DNA from: Syncephalis fuscata S228
Taxonomy: Eukaryota; Fungi; Zoopagomycota
Direction: 5' to 3'
Assembly: GCA_025786725.1 (NCBI GenBank)
Contig: JAHLTZ010000024.1
Span: 62,001-126,000 of the forward strand
Length of the DNA: 64,000 nt
Position numbers and translations under genes: made by a program. The notes beneath the pieces are model-generated. The model was given only the letters and a program-made list of their open reading frames with translations. It did no database searches and had not been told where the DNA came from. Below, in pieces: positions 3,604-62,139 of this stretch (positions within the stretch are counted from its first letter, which is position 1; the number at the start of each line of letters is the position of its first letter).

Positions 3604-5536
3604 TTATATAGGTGCCATACGTACAGGACCGCCACTAGCACTACTGCTTGTATTACCATCGGGCATTCGCAATTGATAGTCTGCCAAACATTATTGACCA
3701 CGAGTCAAGTGTTGTTAAAAGAATAGGAGCGGGCGAGTACAATGTAAGTTCGCATGCTTATGCCAAGCATCAAAGCACTTACCGCCATTTCTAGTGATGT
3801 AGCGCACCCATGGTAACGCTTGATAGCCGCTTTTTTCTACCACCTTCAAATAGCGTACTTGAATGCCACTGACCGTGAAATAAGGAATTTCAAATTGCAC
3901 ATTGATAGGTGGGCGTTTAATATCCGGTTCCTCTACAATAATTAACAAATTGGTAAATTACCTGAATAATTAGTGCAGCCAATAAACTTACCATCGCGCA
4001 CACTAGGTAGCCCAAAATGTGCTCGCATGTAGAATTCTCGCGCACCTTGGAATTGCTTAATCTTCCAAATACAGCATGATTTCTCTGGCACATAGGTTAC
4101 TGTTCCGATACTCGTCTAATGCATTACAATAAAATCATTAGTTTTTTACATCCAGTTTATTAAGTAGTCATATTGTAATAATTGCACATGCTACTTACCT
4201 TGAATTTTGGTGAATCGGCATCATCGGGTACTGGAATACTAATTTGCACGTTGTTGGCCGTTGAACGTCGTTTGAATTGTGCCTTAGCCTATATAATGGT
4301 TAATATATATACTGGCATCTACGATGTATCAAAACTGTACCTTGATCATATACTCAATTCGTGAACTGCTATGTACTTCTACCATGGCTTCACACCAAAT
4401 AAGCGGCTTTACCTATTAATTGTAGACAATTAGCTGTAGGCCCTTCAATAGCCCAGTTTTACCTGCCTGTGTATTAAGACGATAACTCATTAATTCAAAT
4501 TCACCATCTGGTGGAATAAATGAAATTGTGCGATCCGTCTCAAATCGTGACAATCGAACACATTGATGAAATTTAACATCTTCCATTTCAATTGCTTTTC
4601 CTTTGCCGGCAGCTATTGTCGATTAATATTAATAAATTAATGTTTTTATTTGTATTTTATTAAATTCAAACTTACCTCGACCGCTGCTTTCAAATAATAC
4701 TTTGTCATTTAGACCAAGACGTAGCTCAGGCATACCGGTCAAATAGCATTTCATTTTAACAGCACCTAGAATCTCACTTCGTAGTACATTGCCGGTAGAG
4801 CTGACCATAAGATTGATCGACTCGATAACATCAAGAATACTTCATTCTTTCGATATTTAATGCCTTCTGATCGCCAACTAACGGCATTTGTAACGGCATT
4901 GGGTGGTCGAACGGGTGTACGTTCAAGTTTGAATCCTTCTTGTGTTATATATCTGAACGATTATTTAGCTATACTACTGGTCTATTATTAAAACAGCAAC
5001 TTACTCTTTTAGAATCTTTGTTTCCGTAATTTGAGGAAATCCAAAATCCATCATTTCATCAAGCAGTTCATAGGTCAGAACAAAGTTGTCACGAATAGAC
5101 TCCTCTTCTAGTGTTTTGAAATACTCGGTATAGACCTGTTTAAAGTAGATGTTAATAAACGATAGCCTATGTATATAATATACCATATAGCAGCTGTACC
5201 TGTGCCAATTTGTGTAGATATAGAAGAATAGACGTGGCATTCGAGTTTTTTCGCGTCAACGCAAGCACTAAGTACGTAGCAGTCAGAGTTAAAGTATACT
5301 ATACCAATCGCTAGTCATTACGATATAGAAAGGATACAATAGACGTTGTTATGTCGAATATACAAGTAGTGCACGCCCTTATCCGATAGCACCGGTGTAG
5401 GTGTCTGGCCATCTTCCTCGAGTTCTTGCAGTATCGGCATGAATCGGTCAACGGCCGCCATATGCACATCGCCGCGATAATTGCGCGAAATAAGCACCTT
5501 GCCCTTAAGGTCGAGAATAAATACGGCCGATGCCAT
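3604..5536 (-). CDS. APM1: AP-1 adaptor complex mu subunit (multi-exon; one apparent 1-bp deletion near 4833)
   Basis: [106 protein letters not shown]|DYQLRM. Stop TAA at 3604-3606. Confidence 0.96.
5268..5337 (-). other. U12-type (minor spliceosome) GT-AG intron, first intron of the AP-1 mu gene
   Basis: Donor T|GTATCCTTT, branch ACTTTAACTC (5295-5286), acceptor TTAG. Removal restores [16 protein letters not shown]. Confidence 0.9.
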
Positions 5537-5825
5537 GATGATAAAAAGAAACGATTAAACCGGAAATGAACAAGCGTTTAGATGAACTAGAATATGAAGT
5601 GGAGAGTGGAGAGTGGAGAGTGAGTAGGAAAAGACTGGCCACCGCCTTTAAACGTAATAATACCAATTGAGTAATTTGATATGTGTATTGATTTGAACAC
5701 GTCGCTGCTATTGTTAACGTTACCGTTAATAAAACTACGATTGGCCTAGATGTATCATTGGCAGCATGTGTATCCCATGACTATTGCTATAAATGGTTTT
5801 AAATAGGAATTAGACCAGCTAGTCT

Positions 5826-6014
5826 GTGTCTTAATTAATGAGTAAGGATATAACTGACCAGAGTAACGCCTGGTCGTTGTTTGTAATGCGGTTTTCACCG
5901 CGCACAAATAACATCCTCAATATTTGGCGGGTTCACATAAAGGCGTGGCTGCTAGATTGAGCGACGCGAGTACGCAAGTACAAACGTTGCTCTCTAGTGA
6001 TTGCTGGCCTCCGT
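5826..6014 (+). ncRNA. U12: U12 minor spliceosomal snRNA
   Basis: 5' end TGTCTTAATTAATGAGTAAGGATATAAC matches the U12 signature UGCCUUAAACUUAUGAGUAAGGAAAAUAAC. Hairpin GACCAG-AGTAACGC-CTGGTC (cf. loop GGUGACGC), second hairpin 5876-5912, Sm-like site AATATTTGG 5919-5927, then a long 3' stem-loop 5927-6014. Ends are approximate. Confidence 0.88.
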
Positions 6015-7217
6015 GATACTTGATTTTTTGCTAATTTTTTTGGTAATTATGCACCAGCTTAAATAACCAAATAAAGTGTAAAAGTAATTAAATAGTTGAT
6101 TCTATTAAGTAAAGAGAGCTACCATACTTTGACTTTCACATTTTTATTTATCCATTTCACTTCTCAACACTTTTAAATACAATTAAACATTCACTCATCA
6201 CTATAACCATGTATAATATTGCATCCAACACTAATCAATTTATTTGTAATTATCAATACAATAATGTAATTAAATATGCACATTATGGTATTAGTTGAAG
6301 TTGAAATAACATTCAATAAAATAAAAGGCTTTTTACACTGAATTGTTAAACATCTTTGTTGAAATGGTCTACAGGTGTAAAAATAATAAAATAACTGCGA
6401 TTATTAAATATAATTGTTACAATATGCAAATGTAATTCAAGTAAACAGAAACAAGATAGAAAAGAAATAAATCATATAACAGTTTGATGTGCAGTATGAC
6501 AAACAAGCAACAGAAGTAATGAGTAACGACATGGAATTGCAATCATATGGTTTTTATTAATATTCGATCAATCTTTCTACACATGGCCAACAACAACAAT
6601 GATTAACCTCAATGTTTCAAAAATTAAATGGTATGTTACATTATGTATTTAAATCAATTTATTAATAGTATTTTAATAAAAAGTAATATAACTATGTTGT
6701 GCATCACAATGGCATGACTCTGATTGGAACGAATTGTGCTTTGGGGACAGATGTGGGAGTCAAATTACAATAAAACTATTGTTGTAATAAATATATTGTT
6801 GTTTGTGGCATCTAATACTAAAGTTGTAATAGTAAACTTGTATTCTTAATGAATAGTGTGTATAGTGAATATTATTGTCGTAATAATAATAGATCCAACA
6901 TATGGATCGATATTCGTGTAATAAAGTCTAATAGTGTTTAGTTTTAAGAAATAATATCATAATTTAGTCGTAGTATTGCATACTCAATGACCAGTAAATA
7001 AGTATAGATGCAATCAACGTGTTATTGAATATGCTTTAAACGATGGTCATAAGGGCGATCAATGGGTCATGACGTAGTATGATAGAGATAATGGCAGTGG
7101 GCCGTGTAAGTTTTGGTCAACAACATACAAACATACACGATTTTGTAGGTACACAAAGCATGCAAACAAGCGAAACAGGAACGAAAGGAAAAGGAGGACA
7201 GCAAGCACTGCTGGCTT

Positions 7218-7252
7218 TTCTTCTTCTTCTTCTTCTTCTTCTTCTTCTTCTT
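7218..7252. repeat. (CTT)n microsatellite immediately 3' of a stop codon
   Basis: ttcttcttc... tract. Confidence 0.9.
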
Positions 7253-9132
7253 TAATAGTCTTGAGGGAAGAAGGCTGAATCACGTCTAACAAAAGATGGT
7301 GTACGTGGCTCGTCAAATCTTGTTGCAATGGTACCGACACTGCCGCGGCGATTAGATGCACTGTCGTTGCCGCTTTCTGCGCCATCGTCATCATCGTTGT
7401 CGCCATTAGTGTTGCTGCGACCAGCGCGTGGTGGCGCATTCATGTTAGTTGGAATACCAAACATGAGTTCTGGATTAAAGTTTTCCGACATAAGTTTGGA
7501 TAAAGTGGCAGCCCGATCAATGGTTGATGGATTGTCGCGTAGCGGCATACTGCCACTGGCTTCGCCTTCTTCACTTACGGCAGTTAATGGACCGCGTGGT
7601 GACATAAAGTGAGATGGTGCATTAGACGAGACTGAATCGTTATCAAGTGAGTGACGAGCTGGTGGATCTAGCGGCTCATTGTCTAGATTGTGAAGACCAA
7701 GGAATTGGCCCTCCTCGCCTAGACTAGCATTAAGTACAGCGGTGGCCATATCACTTAGTGTTGGGCTGGCTACCGATGACGATTCGCCCATTTCACCTGA
7801 CTCAATGCGGCTAGCTGCAGCAACGGCTGAGGCAATTGTTGGATCGAATGAGTCGCCCATATTGTAACTAAGTCCACGCTTCTTTCTGGTACTTAGTCGA
7901 CGAGTAAGTGGCGATTCTGGCACTGGTAGATTGTCGCGGGAGCTGTTCTTTGAATGCCTATCGCTATCTTCCTCATCACTATCCATACCAACACGTTCTT
8001 CTTCAACTTCAGTGTGAATAGTAAGTGCTACGTGTCCCGAATTGTTCATCGGGCTTGGTAGATCGGAGTACGAGTCAGAGACACGGCGAGCATTGACATT
8101 GGAAAGGCGAAGACGGTGTGGCGTGGCTGGTTCGCTATCTAGCGTGGTAGTGCTATTGGATACTGACGAGTCGTTGTGTTTTGGCGATCCATTAGGCGAC
8201 CAGACTGGACCAGAGATCTGCAGTGGTGGTGGTGGGCCTGTTCGGTGTTCACGGATCTCTAGCGTAGGTAGTGGTGGCAATGCACGAGTACCCGCGGCCG
8301 TGGGAGGTGAATTTGGACGAGAGATAGGAGCTGGCGCCCGATTAAGCGACGACTTATGTTGTAAGAAGCCGGGTGTACGTGAAGCAGCCGCGGCAGCTGC
8401 TACAGCACCGGCAGCAATGCTACTGGATGCATTGCCTACATTGTTGTATGCAGTCGAGCTTGGTGGCAACTGGCGTGTGAACATGGTATTTTCATTGCTA
8501 GAACGGTTACTGTTGACAAATCCTTTTTCTTCAGAGCCACCACGGCCCACCGTAGCAGGGAATATGCCATTGGCTGCACCAGCACCAAATACATTTTTTG
8601 AAAAGGCGTCATGACGACGACGACGACGGTAAACAAATAGACCAACAACAATAATTGCCAATAGTAATGCACCAATAGCACCACCAACAATACCACCAAC
8701 AGCAGCTGATCCAGAGCTGGCATTATCTTCGGCACTGGCACCAATAGCAGCATTGGAACGAACATCTGTACCAGTACCACTCGATCCACTGCCTCCATTA
8801 GTTGGTGCCGTAAAACTTGGTACAGTAACCGTTTCACCAGTAGGTGGTGTCGGCGTAGTAGGTGCAGCTACAGCAGGAACACTGGGTACACTTGGTGAAC
8901 TGGATGCTGTATTGGTAGGCGTGGACGGTGACGACGACGACGACGACGACGACGAACCAGAAGACGGTGTCGATGTAGTCTGTGCCGAGCTGGACGTATC
9001 AGTTGCTGGTGGCGTCGCGGCTGTCGCTGCACCGGCAGTAGGCGTAGCCTGTGTTCCTATGAGCGTCATACCCGGTGGAGGGACAATGTCCGTCGGGCGA
9101 TCACCAGTCCAAGTTGTTTTCCAGTCAGACAT
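7252..9132 (-). CDS. Single-pass membrane protein with S/T/P-rich ectodomain and long disordered cytoplasmic tail (Mid2/mucin-like sensor architecture)
   Basis: Intronless 626-aa ORF; hydrophobic VGGIVGGAIGALLLAIIVVGLFVY followed by RRRRRH stop-transfer; no N-terminal signal peptide. Confidence 0.8.
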   Translation of the reverse strand: MSDWKTTWTGDRPTDIVPPPGMTLIGTQATPTAGAATAATPPATDTSSSAQTTSTPSSGSSSSSSSSSPSTPTNTASSSPSVPSVPAVAAPTTPTPPTGETVTVPSFTAPTNGGSGSSGTGTDVRSNAAIGASAEDNASSGSAAVGGIVGGAIGALLLAIIVVGLFVYRRRRRHDAFSKNVFGAGAANGIFPATVGRGGSEEKGFVNSNRSSNENTMFTRQLPPSSTAYNNVGNASSSIAAGAVAAAAAASRTPGFLQHKSSLNRAPAPISRPNSPPTAAGTRALPPLPTLEIREHRTGPPPPLQISGPVWSPNGSPKHNDSSVSNSTTTLDSEPATPHRLRLSNVNARRVSDSYSDLPSPMNNSGHVALTIHTEVEEERVGMDSDEEDSDRHSKNSSRDNLPVPESPLTRRLSTRKKRGLSYNMGDSFDPTIASAVAAASRIESGEMGESSSVASPTLSDMATAVLNASLGEEGQFLGLHNLDNEPLDPPARHSLDNDSVSSNAPSHFMSPRGPLTAVSEEGEASGSMPLRDNPSTIDRAATLSKLMSENFNPELMFGIPTNMNAPPRAGRSNTNGDNDDDDGAESGNDSASNRRGSVGTIATRFDEPRTPSFVRRDSAFFPQDY

Positions 9133-15674: not shown

Positions 15675-17879
15675 TTATAATGTTACGATTGAGATGGGTG
15701 TCGTCGTCGCCTTTGTTTTATCCATATTGGCATCTTCTTTTTCCATTGTGGTGCGTTTACGTTTAACTTGAAGAAATCCTTGAGCACCGTCAAAGTAACG
15801 ACTATTTAATTGTTGGAGCTTTTGGGCACGAGCCTCAGGATTCTCCAATTCAATGCCCTGTACAGGTGTAAAGGCCAGCGATGAAGATAATCCAGAAGTG
15901 GCACCCGATGAACCAGACCATAGGTTTTAAGGCGCCTCTGCATTGCATTACTAACATTGGCTAGAAAGCATAAACATAAGCATAAATAATAAATAATAAA
16001 TAACATGTTAATAGTATTGCTACTAATGGCTTACTTTTTGTACGAGATTCGGCGACAGCAGCACGAATACGTCCAATTTGTTTGGTCATCATGCCTAGTC
16101 CTCTTGACTCATCCATAGAAAAGCTCTCGTCTTCTAAAGCATTAAAGTGTACACGGTTCTGTTGACGTCGTAGTTCGGTCAATTCATAGGCCTCTTTTTG
16201 TTTACGCACACTATAATAGCATAAATAGTAGCACGATGTTAGTCTAGCCATCTCTACTTACCGTCGACCACCACGCTTTTTCTTAGCCGCTTCAATGGGT
16301 GCCGGAAGAGCACGCGTATTCTTATTAGGTGCTGGTTCTTGCATCTTTTCAAGTCGCTTTCTAATTCTTGTAACATTTCTTGACCATTTTCACCTAAACA
16401 CAATAAACAATAATTCTATTATTTACGCTTTAACTATTTACCGTTAGATCCTTTCTGACACCGATCAATACGTGCAGCAAGTGTACATCTAATCATAATA
16501 TAACATACAACACATTAATTAATCAATCAAATCTATGTACAAAAAATATAATAACTTACTTGGCCGCCACAATACGTGTAGCTTTTGTACGTAGATCAAG
16601 TGGGATACGCGATATAAGTTCGGAATAGTATATAAATCCTGCGTGACGTTGCATGCCAATATTAGAAAATCCCGTGCGTGCTTTGGCCGATGCACCTAAT
16701 ACCTAATTAATAGAACCATTAGAATCTAAATAGCTATATCTACTAATACTTACTTGAATATTACAAGCTGGCATTTTACTTAAAGCAGTTAAACCACCCG
16801 CTGCACCCATCATCTTTGCTGCAGTAGATGTGCCGATAATAGCCGATAAATTGGGTGCAATCAGTTGCATTCTCGATTCAACATAATTAAGTATCTAATA
16901 GCAACATTAGCCTATACAATTATTACATTTATTATATTGCTATATCTCTATTACCTTGCTGCGTGCTTCATCGAGTGACAGTGCCATAGTACATGCTTCA
17001 TCAACCAACTGCCACTCTTCTTCGCTTAAAAGACGACCACGCGTTGTAGAACCGGCCATCCTCACTACCATAATAGTCGCTGAAGGCAATACTGTATCCA
17101 AACTAAGGTTGGCCAAATCCTATCCATAATATTGCAACGAGGTTAATACATTAATATAGTAATCGTTATTCATTCATCTTACCGGTGCATTGCCAATCGC
17201 CTTTACAGTCTGTACATAATCATATGGATTCAACACTAGTGATTCCAATTCAGGAAAACGAGCAGCATAATGATCTCTAATAAACTACATAAATACATTA
17301 GAGTTGGTCGATCATAACAGTAGTAATGGTGGCGGTAGTAGTATACCGTTTAGCCATCCTACCTTATGTACAGCAAGAATCTCATTATCGACATCAGCAG
17401 TTAAATTGTTGGCTTGTACAATTGTTGTATATTCTGGATGATGTTCAACTGGCCCAGCAAAACTGGCTGCCGTTGCTTGTTGCTGTGTAAATTCTCCAAT
17501 TCGCTATACCGCCAAAAATATTAATAAACTAGATTCAGTATATTATTCGTTGTAGAATACCTGTAGAATACCCATCACTGTTCTGGTACGCAATAACTTT
17601 GCTACATCGTGTATACTCTTCGCACTAGCCACTAATTGATTAATACGTCTTTCTGTTTCTTCAGCTTCTCTTTCGAAATGGCTACTATATCGCTGCTATT
17701 GACTTGTTGTTGCAGCGTGGATTCATCGTCTTCCATAATTCATCCTGATCCACATCTAGTCCGTCTTCTCCATCGGCCATAGCATTGCGGTCAGTCGCCA
17801 GGTTGTCGTCTGATCCGGCTTCATCTAAATCATTGCCAAGATCGTCGAGATCTGCCAGTAATTCATCGGCAAGTGACAT
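15675..17879 (-). CDS. PRP31: Tri-snRNP protein Prp31 (multi-exon; apparent 1-bp deletions near 17737, 17688, 16365)
   Basis: [113 protein letters not shown]. Confidence 0.95.
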
Positions 17880-18053
17880 CGTGTAAAAGAATAAAGAAAT
17901 AAAAAGAACCACCTTCTTAATTAATTATAGGCCATTTTTTGTGGTAAAAAGAATAACATCACAGAAATTATTTTAATAATTTAAAACACTCAATCCATTT
18001 TTCATTAGCCATTGCAACAACATTAACACAGTAGCCGTAACAATAGCGCCAAT

Positions 18054-59621: not shown

Positions 59622-62139
59622 CTGTTGTTGTGCTAATTCATTAGTTGAATGTACTCCATTTGATTTTGAGGATAATTTACTGCGTTTAGGAATCTTGTAA
59701 ACAACTTTAAGCTCTTTCCAATCATCGATTAACTAGAACAATTATCAATATAAATATAATAAACTATATATGTATATTCATTCTATACCTTGGTGGCCAT
59801 TTCTGAAATGGTGGCATCCTCATGTGAAGTAAAAGTATCCACAACATGATCAGCACCACAAGCATTAATTGTATTACGTATAGTGATTGGTAATCGACCC
59901 ATTAATCCCAATACCTATTTAATAATTAATATTAATATTAATACTAATATTATTTAATTAATCCATTAATCCATTAATTACCAATTGACACAATTCATCA
60001 TTTTTATGATGATATTCAACTAAATATAATTTAAGTACTTGAAGACCATGCGTATTCATAAACTTTCTTAATAAAGCCGGTGATTCAGTCATCTATATCA
60101 ATAGTGTTATTATATCATATCATATCAATTATAAATACCAATATGTTACTAGACTTACATTAAGAAACATTAATAACTTTTGCGCATAATCTAATTGATT
60201 CGCATATTTCATCATTAATGGTACAAATTTCTCTACTTGTTCAATGGTCTGTAATCCACGTGGTCGATGCTAATAAAAAGTTAATTAATTAGTTAATATT
60301 TCACTATATCGATAATAATAATAATAATAATAATAATGTTATTTACCTTTGTAGATGTCCTTATGTCATCTTCATCCTCCTCTAATTCATCTTCGTATTC
60401 ATCTTCTTCATAATTCTCGTTATCTTCATCTTCATCCGATTCATCATCCATTAGACGACGACCACGACCACGACGACCTTTTGACAGTCTGCCCCGTCTA
60501 CGACGAATTGGCACTGCCGCCTCCATATCCATTTCTCCATCAGCCGATAATGAGGCATCGGTAGACAGAAAGGCTATACAGAGTAATACCAATATTATTA
60601 TAATTAGTATCCATCATGACTATATCTATTCAATTTAATCCAATAATTACCAAAATCCAATTCCAGGGTCTTTTGACTTGATTTTGCTTCTCCACCAATA
60701 AAACCTTTACAATTGGATTCACCACAGTAACACGGCTGTGCTTCCGCTCTATTAAATATTAATATTATTAATTATTAATTATTAATTATTAATTATTAAA
60801 ACTATACTTGCCCATAACGTTGAAATTTATAATCAAATGTCAATTCTTCTCCTTGAAGAACGCGTCTTAATGTGAAGATACCCATACGTGTCCGAGCACC
60901 TACTGTCCACTTTTGTAATACACAGTTAGGATTACAACTATGATTAATGAAACGAGCATAAGAGCCTTTTTTAGTTGCATCAATATACTGATAAATTAAA
61001 TATTAGTATGGTGCTAATACCAACATCAATATCAACATCAATACTCACCTCCTCACTATTAAGTGTCATAAAATAATGATGAGCAATGCCTTCTTGTGCA
61101 TATTGGCGGGCTCGTTTCACAAACCAGGACTGTGGTAACACTTCACCCACATATTCCATAACAAAGGCATTACTAATAAAGTATTAATACAGTTAATATA
61201 GCATCGACATTGATAGTTACCTTTCAATTCCTTCAATGGCTTGTATACCATAGCCTTTCTTGTCCGTTTTAATCACTTGAACTGATGCGTATTCTTTTAA
61301 TTGGAATCTATTAAACAGTCAGTATCCATTGCCTACTATCCAGTATCTATACCTACCTTCTATTTAAACAGTAATTGCCACAGGGACAGTCTTCAGGATT
61401 ACATTCAATATACAAGTGCCGGTTAACACAGTTTGAATCTTCTCCACACGCCACCTCACGATCATCAACATCTAATCCATTATGGCCATCAATGACTCTA
61501 CTATTATTATTATGGCAATTATATGGATATTAATCATTACCTGGTTCATATTGGCACTGACAAGGAAAGCTTTCACTGCCAAGCATACCCTCGGCTCTTC
61601 CCTTGGCCCCTCCACGGAATAGACACGCATTGATTGGTTCAAATAGTTGTGCTGCTTCCTTATCTGCATTAGGCAGTATCGAATAAGCATGATGCGGCAA
61701 TGGCGATGCAGGTGAAGATGATCGTGCTCGTCGTGGTGGTGATATTGAAGCATACGTAGAATCTTTTTAATTAATACAGCATTATTAATAACAAGCAATA
61801 TTGAATAGTATTATCTATATCTATATCTATATATACCTGGTGTATATGTCGCATAAATAGCATGTTCATCTCTTTCGTGTTCATCTTGATACGGCGATAA
61901 TTGACCCGTATGGAATATATCTATTATTGATCAGTTATTATTAAGTAATTCGCCCCTTTATTTGTCTATCTATGCCATTGTCATGCCAATATCCCTAGAC
62001 TTGGCAGCTTACCTGATCCATGAACCAATAAGTCGGTTGAGACTACATTATTGCCGCCACCTCCATCGCCACCACTGCTATTGTTACTGTTGTTGCCATG
62101 GCCATTACCGGTAGGAATCATGGCCGTGGACACCTCCAT
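57556..62139 (-). CDS. SET2: Histone H3K36 methyltransferase Set2 (AWS-SET-postSET, WW, SRI)
   Basis: CGEDSNCVNRHLYIEC, KKGYG, EYVGEV, IDATKKGSYARFINHSCNPN, GEELTFDYKF, CYCGESNCKGFIG; WW LPPNWKSA...YYYNTVTGKTQWSRP; SRI VVKCLSKYK...RVKKFVKDCM. Confidence 0.95.

Follow-up and report, generated by a model that had tools for sequence, protein, structure and literature searches.

A U12 snRNA gene divergently paired with the AP-1 mu gene in Syncephalis fuscata and other Zoopagomycota

In the genome of the zoopagomycete fungus Syncephalis fuscata S228, the gene for U12 small nuclear RNA (snRNA) lies head-to-head with the AP-1 mu gene, and the first intron of AP-1 mu is itself of the U12 type. The locus therefore raises the question of why a gene for a minor-spliceosome RNA should adjoin one of that RNA's own candidate substrates, and whether the arrangement is an accident, a regulatory device or the product of some other constraint. 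The DNA analyzed, referred to below as the window, is a stretch of 64,000 nucleotides (nt) comprising positions 62,001 to 126,000 of the forward strand of contig JAHLTZ010000024.1 (GenBank assembly GCA_025786725.1); coordinates without a further label are positions in the window. An initial annotation, made from the sequence alone, had described the two genes and suggested that they may share a bidirectional promoter. We found the head-to-head pair in five species representing three subphyla of Zoopagomycota and did not find it in eight other fungi.

Minor introns have already been reported from Basidiobolus (n = 249) and Rhizophagus (n = 205), and minor snRNAs of Zoopagomycota and Glomeromycotina have been published in the same survey, the main text of which does not name Syncephalis (Larue & Roy 2023, PMC10639083). 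U12 has been known in early-diverging fungi since 2008 (Davila Lopez et al. 2008, PMC2396436). We regard the RNA and the intron described here as additions to known kinds, and the deep conservation of the pair and the U6-like promoter of the U12 gene as new variations of a familiar arrangement. Full-text literature searches returned neither a U12/AP-1 mu linkage nor any account of fungal snRNA-gene synteny, in keeping with the view of the initial annotation that the linkage is undescribed, and AP-1 mu did not come up in them as a gene with a minor intron.

The U12 gene, the AP-1 mu intron and the minor spliceosome

A U12-like RNA had been proposed on the plus strand from about position 5826. 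The Rfam U12 model RF00007 matched positions 5826-5997 of this strand with a score of 34.6 bits over model positions 1-151, which is the full length of the model (E = 3.6e-5 in a local search). The same locus was the only match reported in a genome-wide search with RF00007 (E = 4.1e-4). The gene spans about 198 nt (5826..6023, plus strand) and has the 5' end GUGUCUUAAUUAAUGAGUAAGGAUAUAAC, stem-loop I, stem-loop IIa, an enlarged stem-loop IIb, the Sm site AAUAUUUGG and a long 3' stem-loop. The branch-site-binding hallmark AUGAGUAAGGA is exact at 5838-5848 and identical in all five species that have the pair. The Sm site, located between stem-loop II and the 3' stem-loop, is likewise present in all five. 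The fold z-score of the RNA is -4.2, and folding lengthens the 3' stem to about 6022-6023; the 3' tail GAUUGCUGGCCUCCGUG..AUACUUGA is kept in three Syncephalis species, which supports the extended stem. Of the 41 consensus pairs in an alignment of the U12 sequences of four species, 11 show compensatory changes; such pairs are present in stem-loop IIa (four consecutive pairs) and in stem-loop III. The proposed U12-like RNA is thus supported by a full-length family match, by hallmark motifs and by covariation of its stems.

The RNA resembles known U12 (RF00007) in its 5' end, the branch-binding GUAAGGA, the order of the stem-loops, the Sm site and the long 3' stem-loop. It differs in being enlarged by insertions in stem-loops IIb and III, in the sequence of its Sm site and in its score. 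The U12 genes compared, L008:11891-12147 and L009:7665-7888 among them, vary in length from around 155 nt in Basidiobolus and Dimargaris to around 257 nt in S. plumigaleata, owing to insertions located in stem-loop IIb and midway along the 3' stem-loop. The Dimargaris RNA has the low score of 22.8 bits, yet its 5' motif is an exact match, its Sm site is that of the other species and a 3' stem-loop is present. Positions 5826-6023 are predicted from these features to encode the single, enlarged U12 snRNA of this genome.

The AP-1 mu gene occupies 3607..5536 of the minus strand, with the ATG at 5536, the stop codon near 3607 and about 10 exons. Translation and exon matches located it where the initial annotation had placed it. 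An internal exon matched solved AP-1 mu1 chains at 2e-24 versus 3e-15 for AP-2 mu, and also matched Pfam Adap_comp_sub. Exon 1 (5338..5536, minus strand) consists of 66 codons plus 1 nt, encodes MASAVF...IRHNNVY and is single copy in the 29.4-Mb genome. A further intron of the gene, at 4413-4466 after ...YRLNTQ, starts with GCAGGT and is a probable GC-AG intron; the corresponding intron of S. plumigaleata starts with GTAGGA.

Intron 1 (5268..5337, minus strand) is a phase 1, GT-AG intron of 70 nt that we assign to the U12 type. The donor GTATCCTTT at 5337-5329 matches the minor consensus /RTATCCTTT. The branch CTTTAAC is found at 5294-5288 (CTTTAACTC occupies 5294-5286), and the presumed branch A is placed 21 nt ahead of the AG that ends the intron. 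The branch sequence ACTTTAAC can form seven Watson-Crick pairs and one G-U pair with GAGUAAGG of the U12 RNA, as judged from the sequence and by RNAduplex; both the minor donor and this pairing are as the initial annotation had claimed. Removal of intron 1 keeps the reading frame, giving the junction ...HNNVY/LLALTRKN found in the orthologues. The 9-mer GTATCCTTT is present at the same site and in the same phase in S. plumigaleata, S. pseudoplumigaleata, Basidiobolus and Rhizophagus, that is, in five species of two phyla when the window is included. The remainder of the intron is not conserved across the five species.

Intron 1 had also been put forward as the only U12-type intron in the window, and our scan agrees with this. 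The window has four further RTATCCTT matches, one of which is the complement of AAGGAUAU in the U12 gene itself. The remaining three were rejected as U12-type introns on account of having no branch consensus nearby. RTATCCTT is not enriched in the window (5 found versus 5.7 expected), and so the case for the intron rests on exon context and orthologue conservation and not on motif count.

The same genome holds other components of a minor spliceosome. U11 (47.5 bits) and U6atac (37.8 bits) were both detected above their gathering scores elsewhere in the genome, as was an exon of the PDCD7 (U11/U12-59K) family above its cut-off. The strict pattern RTATCCTTT-N15-200-YCCTTRAY gave 22 matches genome-wide versus 4 in a reversed control, and a relaxed minor-intron pattern gave 146 versus 51. 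Many of the relaxed matches are compact introns of 50-80 nt with ATCCTTAAC, and we estimate that the genome may hold 60-100 minor-type introns. RNAduplex predicts the pairing of U12 with the branch site, of U12 with U6atac, and of U11 and U6atac with the 5' splice site. By eye, AAUUA of U12 pairs with UAGUU of U6atac; the human counterpart is AACUU with AGGUU, relative to which the pair appears to be a compensatory change.

In the co-occurrence of U12 with U11, U6atac and RTATCCTTT introns, Syncephalis is like known minor systems. The working minor spliceosome proposed by the initial annotation is supported at the sequence level by U11, U6atac, the PDCD7 exon, the many minor introns and the covarying U12 stems. 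The fungus very likely retains this machinery, and AP-1 mu intron 1 would be an old U12-type intron removed by it in vivo. Two side observations concern the minor introns of the genome. A candidate AT-AC minor intron (ATATCCTTG...CGCTTAACTACTATAC) is located at C112:800554 (plus strand), two genes away from U6 and 2.5 kb upstream of it. Near-identical copies, two or three of each, exist for several of the consensus minor introns (C13:521139, 605781, 619639 and others), which suggests that some minor-intron genes lie in recent segmental duplications.

Conservation of the pair among fungi

Contigs carrying AP-1 mu orthologues were reached through the neighboring 626-amino acid (aa) open reading frame (ORF) in Syncephalis and through named full-length AP-1 mu proteins in the other fungi. 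They were scanned with Rfam and with the AUGAGUAAGGA motif, and the intron site was inspected in each. Absence of the pair was judged near AP-1 mu on those contigs. The pair is present in all three Syncephalis species (Zoopagomycotina), with spacers of 289 bp in the window, 305 bp in S. plumigaleata and 319 bp in S. pseudoplumigaleata and with U12 scores of 34.6, 27.4 and 33.1 bits, respectively. It is also present in Basidiobolus meristosporus (Entomophthoromycotina in the broad sense; 277 bp, 46.9 bits) and in Dimargaris verticillata (Kickxellomycotina; 416 bp). The intron is U12-type in the first four species; Dimargaris has no intron at the site.

The eight other fungi lack the pair. U12 was not found near AP-1 mu by motif search and Rfam in seven of them, and by motif search only in the eighth, Neoconidiobolus. 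In Piptocephalis (Zoopagomycotina) there is no U12 within about 10 kb and the intron is U2-type (GTATGT). Neoconidiobolus and Entomophthora, both Entomophthoromycotina, have neither the pair nor an intron at the site. Rhizophagus irregularis (Glomeromycotina) has the U12-type intron and no U12 within 10 kb. The intron is U2-type in the other four fungi without the pair: Cunninghamella (Mucorales; 1.7 kb upstream scanned), Lobosporangium (Mortierellomycotina), Batrachochytrium (Chytridiomycota) and Allomyces (Blastocladiomycota). A metagenome scan with the AP-1 mu alignment yielded 80 loci, most of them lacking introns or belonging to Dikarya, and none had the U12 motif. The matches of a protein search with exon 1 were mostly short fragments of no more than 65% identity, which did not lead to close relatives.

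Five species in three subphyla are difficult to reconcile with the possibility, raised by the initial annotation, that the adjacency is a coincidence. The pair appears to be no younger than the last ancestor shared by the three Zoopagomycota subphyla, which split several hundred million years ago. The U2-type introns in the chytrids and in Allomyces indicate that the intron site is older than the pair. The site, U12-type in two phyla, has undergone conversion or loss in the others. The initial annotation had attached significance to the partner gene being a U12 substrate, and this part of its proposal was not supported. In Dimargaris the pair stands although AP-1 mu lacks the intron; in Rhizophagus it is the U12-type intron that survives, and no U12 lies within 10 kb. 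The substrate link is therefore likely to be incidental.

Long retention of two genes about 300 bp apart could also be, in part, neutral. In its full form this explanation holds that the pair is an ancestral accident without shared regulation, preserved by the smallness of a 300-400-bp target for rearrangement. Other adjacencies around AP-1 mu, those with PRP31 and SRP-alpha, have persisted too, as a neutral leftover would lead one to expect, and the spacer is unconserved outside three short blocks. The immediate called neighbors, however, otherwise all differ among the three subphyla: apart from AP-1 mu itself, no Pfam family is shared, and the pair is therefore not simply part of a large conserved block. 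Moreover, the pair occurs in every sampled member of Zoopagomycota that has either a U12 detected near AP-1 mu or a surviving U12-type intron. Marz et al. are said to have noted in 2008 that animal snRNA genes rarely hold their position over long times. We consider a purely neutral leftover to be rather unlikely, if a possibility to be taken seriously.

The surroundings of the pair include several further genes. PRP31, identified by a Prp31_C match, lies at about 15961-17912 on the minus strand of the window, about 10 kb upstream of AP-1 mu and in the same orientation, and the same placement is seen elsewhere in Syncephalis (L008:1-2016). It is directly upstream of AP-1 mu in Batrachochytrium (L017:7220-9286), an old neighborhood common to a chytrid and a zoopagomycete. 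PRP31 is a protein of the U4/U6 and U4atac/U6atac small nuclear ribonucleoproteins. SRP-alpha, of the signal recognition particle (SRP) receptor, is found just downstream of AP-1 mu in Piptocephalis (L010:14751-17122) and Basidiobolus (L012:12798-15131). The 626-aa ORF of the window (7252-9132, minus strand) is Ser/Thr-rich, and its only relatives are in S. plumigaleata (65% identity) and S. pseudoplumigaleata (56% identity), together with one JGI protein (61% identity).

The divergent spacer and its promoters

The spacer (5537..5825) measures 289 bp from the AP-1 mu ATG to U12 +1, in agreement with the previous figure of about 290 bp. Three short blocks stand out in it. ATTGG, equivalent to CCAAT in the direction of AP-1 mu, is located mid-spacer at 5740..5744, with a second copy at 5757-5761. 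A TCCCAT box at 5773..5778 (plus strand) is at -53 of U12 and resembles the proximal sequence element (PSE) or upstream sequence element (USE) of snRNA promoters. The TATA-like box TTTAAATAG at 5798..5806 (plus strand) is at -28. In a four-species alignment ATCCCAY is invariant, and it is the ATTGG, TCCCAY and TATA blocks that are conserved. CGATTGG is found 33-34 bp upstream of TCCCAY in the three Syncephalis species, and Basidiobolus has CGATTAG. The other two Syncephalis species share this geometry of the U12 boxes; in Basidiobolus the boxes are at -61 and -27. The spacer also contains a purine-rich (GGAGAGT)n tract at about 5600-5630, toward the ATG, that is CT-rich on the AP-1 mu strand. 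We conclude that the U12 gene is likely to have a self-contained proximal promoter within about 60 bp.

A TCCCAY box is found at -52 to -72 upstream of every snRNA gene examined in the genome. It is at -61 in U1, -62 in both copies of U2, -69 in U4 and -72 in U11, and none of these genes has a TATA-like box near -28. It is at -52 in U6 and -64 in U6atac, and these two genes have the TATA-like boxes TTTATATAG at -28 and TTAAATAG at -29, respectively. Among the snRNA genes examined, a T(T)TA(A/T)ATAG box at -28/-29 is present only in U6, U6atac and U12. Promoter layout thus groups U12 with U6 and U6atac and not with U1, U2, U4 and U11.

The USE of plant snRNA genes is RTCCCACATCG, accompanied by a TATA box. 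Plant snRNA promoters and the vertebrate PSE likewise combine a TCCCAY-type upstream element with a TATA box at about -28 in some genes, and in both systems, as here, the presence or spacing of the TATA box splits the snRNA genes into two classes. The Syncephalis U12 gene belongs with U6 and U6atac in the class with TATA at -28, and the spacings depart from the plant rule. In plants and animals U12 is a gene of RNA polymerase II (Pol II). The layout weakly suggests that U12 in this lineage may be transcribed by RNA polymerase III (Pol III). A run of six T residues (6024..6029, plus strand) abuts the 3' stem of U12 and may represent either a Pol III terminator or plain AT-rich flank. A T run is also directly 3' of U12 in S. 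plumigaleata (T8) and Basidiobolus (T5), and in S. pseudoplumigaleata a T5 run occurs a few bases further on. The argument from a T-run terminator is not discriminating, since U1 and U2 likewise end in T5.

A second snRNA gene of the genome has a similar neighbor. In the region C306:263074-263600 (L103:1078-1665), the U1 gene (90 bits) lies 225 bp head-to-head from a La-domain gene. The first intron of the latter is a textbook case of the U12 type (L103:1139->1078; 62 nt, phase 1, GTATCCTTTT...TGCCTTAAC...TAG) and interrupts the Pfam La profile near position 30. Two minor introns were seen within 500 bp of the 5' ends of eight snRNA genes versus about 0.03 expected, an estimate that assumes about 80-100 minor introns in 29.4 Mb, was made post hoc and is confounded by gene age. 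The two cases, and the conservation of the pair across three subphyla, would fit a functional coupling in which a single bidirectional promoter co-regulates the supply of U12 and its substrate and snRNA genes are preferentially paired with minor-intron genes. The enrichment, however, amounts to two cases, and minor-intron genes and the neighbors of snRNA genes are both old housekeeping genes. The Dimargaris pair persists without the AP-1 mu intron, and the Rhizophagus intron has no U12 nearby. An snRNA of the Sm class normally matures away from its gene and acts in trans, and we know of no cis benefit to an snRNA gene of adjoining its substrate. We therefore regard functional coupling as very unlikely. 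A broader proposal, that snRNA genes are selectively tethered to minor-intron housekeeping genes and that U12 is expressed from a U6-type, possibly Pol III, promoter within a Pol II/Pol III bidirectional unit, seems to us quite unlikely.

The reading that we favor, with a probability of roughly 70%, is that the constraint of a compact divergent promoter keeps the U12/AP-1 mu pair together and that the substrate status of AP-1 mu is incidental. The U12 gene would be driven by its own compact snRNA-type promoter, consisting of TCCCAT at -53 and the TATA-like box at -28. As a single-copy and highly transcribed gene, it would be placed in the open promoter region of AP-1 mu, a constitutive housekeeping gene. 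Both promoters would be packed into a few hundred base pairs, probably sharing the conserved central CCAAT element, and rearrangement inside the 280-420-bp spacer would be selected against. The pair would be retained because any break would damage the single-copy essential U12 or AP-1 mu. That the partner is a U12 substrate would most likely be incidental, the pair outliving the intron.

Divergent pairs of non-coding and coding genes with bidirectional promoters have been described in human (PARP2-RPPH1, MED16-U6.9 and RPS29-7SL; Anno et al. 2011, PMC3082894). The same study lists human U12 snRNA among pairs separated by less than 1 kb, and it tested PARP2-RPPH1 and MED16-U6.9 functionally (PMC3082894). 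In the human pairs, as in Syncephalis, a gene of the snRNA type having an external PSE/TATA promoter is separated by a few hundred base pairs from a housekeeping protein gene in head-to-head orientation. The Syncephalis pair differs in that the partner is AP-1 mu, in that it is conserved across fungal subphyla, and in being known here from sequence alone. The human pairs use Staf/ZNF143, whereas in the Syncephalis spacer the conserved CCAAT block is the candidate shared element.

Several observations weigh against the favored reading or against the gene assignments beneath it. The conservation of the pair is drawn from a sample of one to three species per subphylum. The U12 score of 34.6 bits is below the RF00007 gathering score of 53, as are the scores of all five species (22.8-46.9 bits), and for this reason an Rfam scan of the whole window at gathering thresholds, in which no family reached its score, was empty; the match is visible only under an E-value threshold. 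The expectation of finding the other minor snRNAs was borne out for U11 and U6atac and not for U4atac (RF00618), which the genome search did not find. Nor did that search find the zf-U11-48K zinc finger. The distance from branch to AG in intron 1 is long for the U12 type, at 21 nt here and 18-31 nt in the orthologues. The U12-type branch TCCTTRAY is usually about 10-15 nt, and up to about 20 nt, from the 3' splice site, and in consensus minor introns of the same genome the branch A is 8-18 nt from the AG. A U2-like CTGAC is present 15 nt from the AG of intron 1.

The assembled AP-1 mu gene, in addition, has an apparent 1-nt frameshift at 4832, where it is one base short: ...KNEVFL and DVIESINL... 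have a single G in common and do not lie in the same frame. To TTCTTGATGTT of the window corresponds TTCCTCGATGTC in S. plumigaleata, and both S. plumigaleata and Dimargaris are intact at this point. A second copy of AP-1 mu was considered as an explanation and rejected, the gene being single copy. As AP-1 mu occurs only once and shows no other damage, we read the frameshift as probably an assembly error.

The low Rfam score and the available CTGAC branch would also be expected if the RNA were a nonfunctional U12, either a pseudogene or a chance match, and the intron a U2-type intron with an odd donor. Such an RNA would, however, be the only U12 candidate reported in a genome with U11, U6atac and dozens of consensus minor introns, and it would have to have acquired compensatory changes across subphyla. 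A U2-type intron is similarly at odds with a 9-mer donor that is invariant in five species. Furthermore, position +5 of the donor GTATCC is a C and not a G, which argues against pairing with U1. This alternative is extremely improbable in our estimation.

Significance for snRNA genes and minor introns

snRNA genes usually move freely. In Zoopagomycota the position of one snRNA gene has been held beside one protein gene across all three subphyla. The compact divergent promoter that we favor as the explanation would make the pair a concrete and testable example of how promoter sharing can constrain an essential RNA gene that is present in a single copy. The position upstream of AP-1 mu may also serve as a marker for divergent U12 genes that are missed by Rfam thresholds in these fungi. 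The AP-1 mu intron, U12-type in two fungal phyla and U2-type or lost elsewhere, should be useful for studies of intron-type conversion. Finally, the U6-like promoter of the U12 gene and the U1/La-domain gene pair raise the question of how U12 is transcribed in this lineage and of whether snRNA genes and minor-intron genes tend to be paired.

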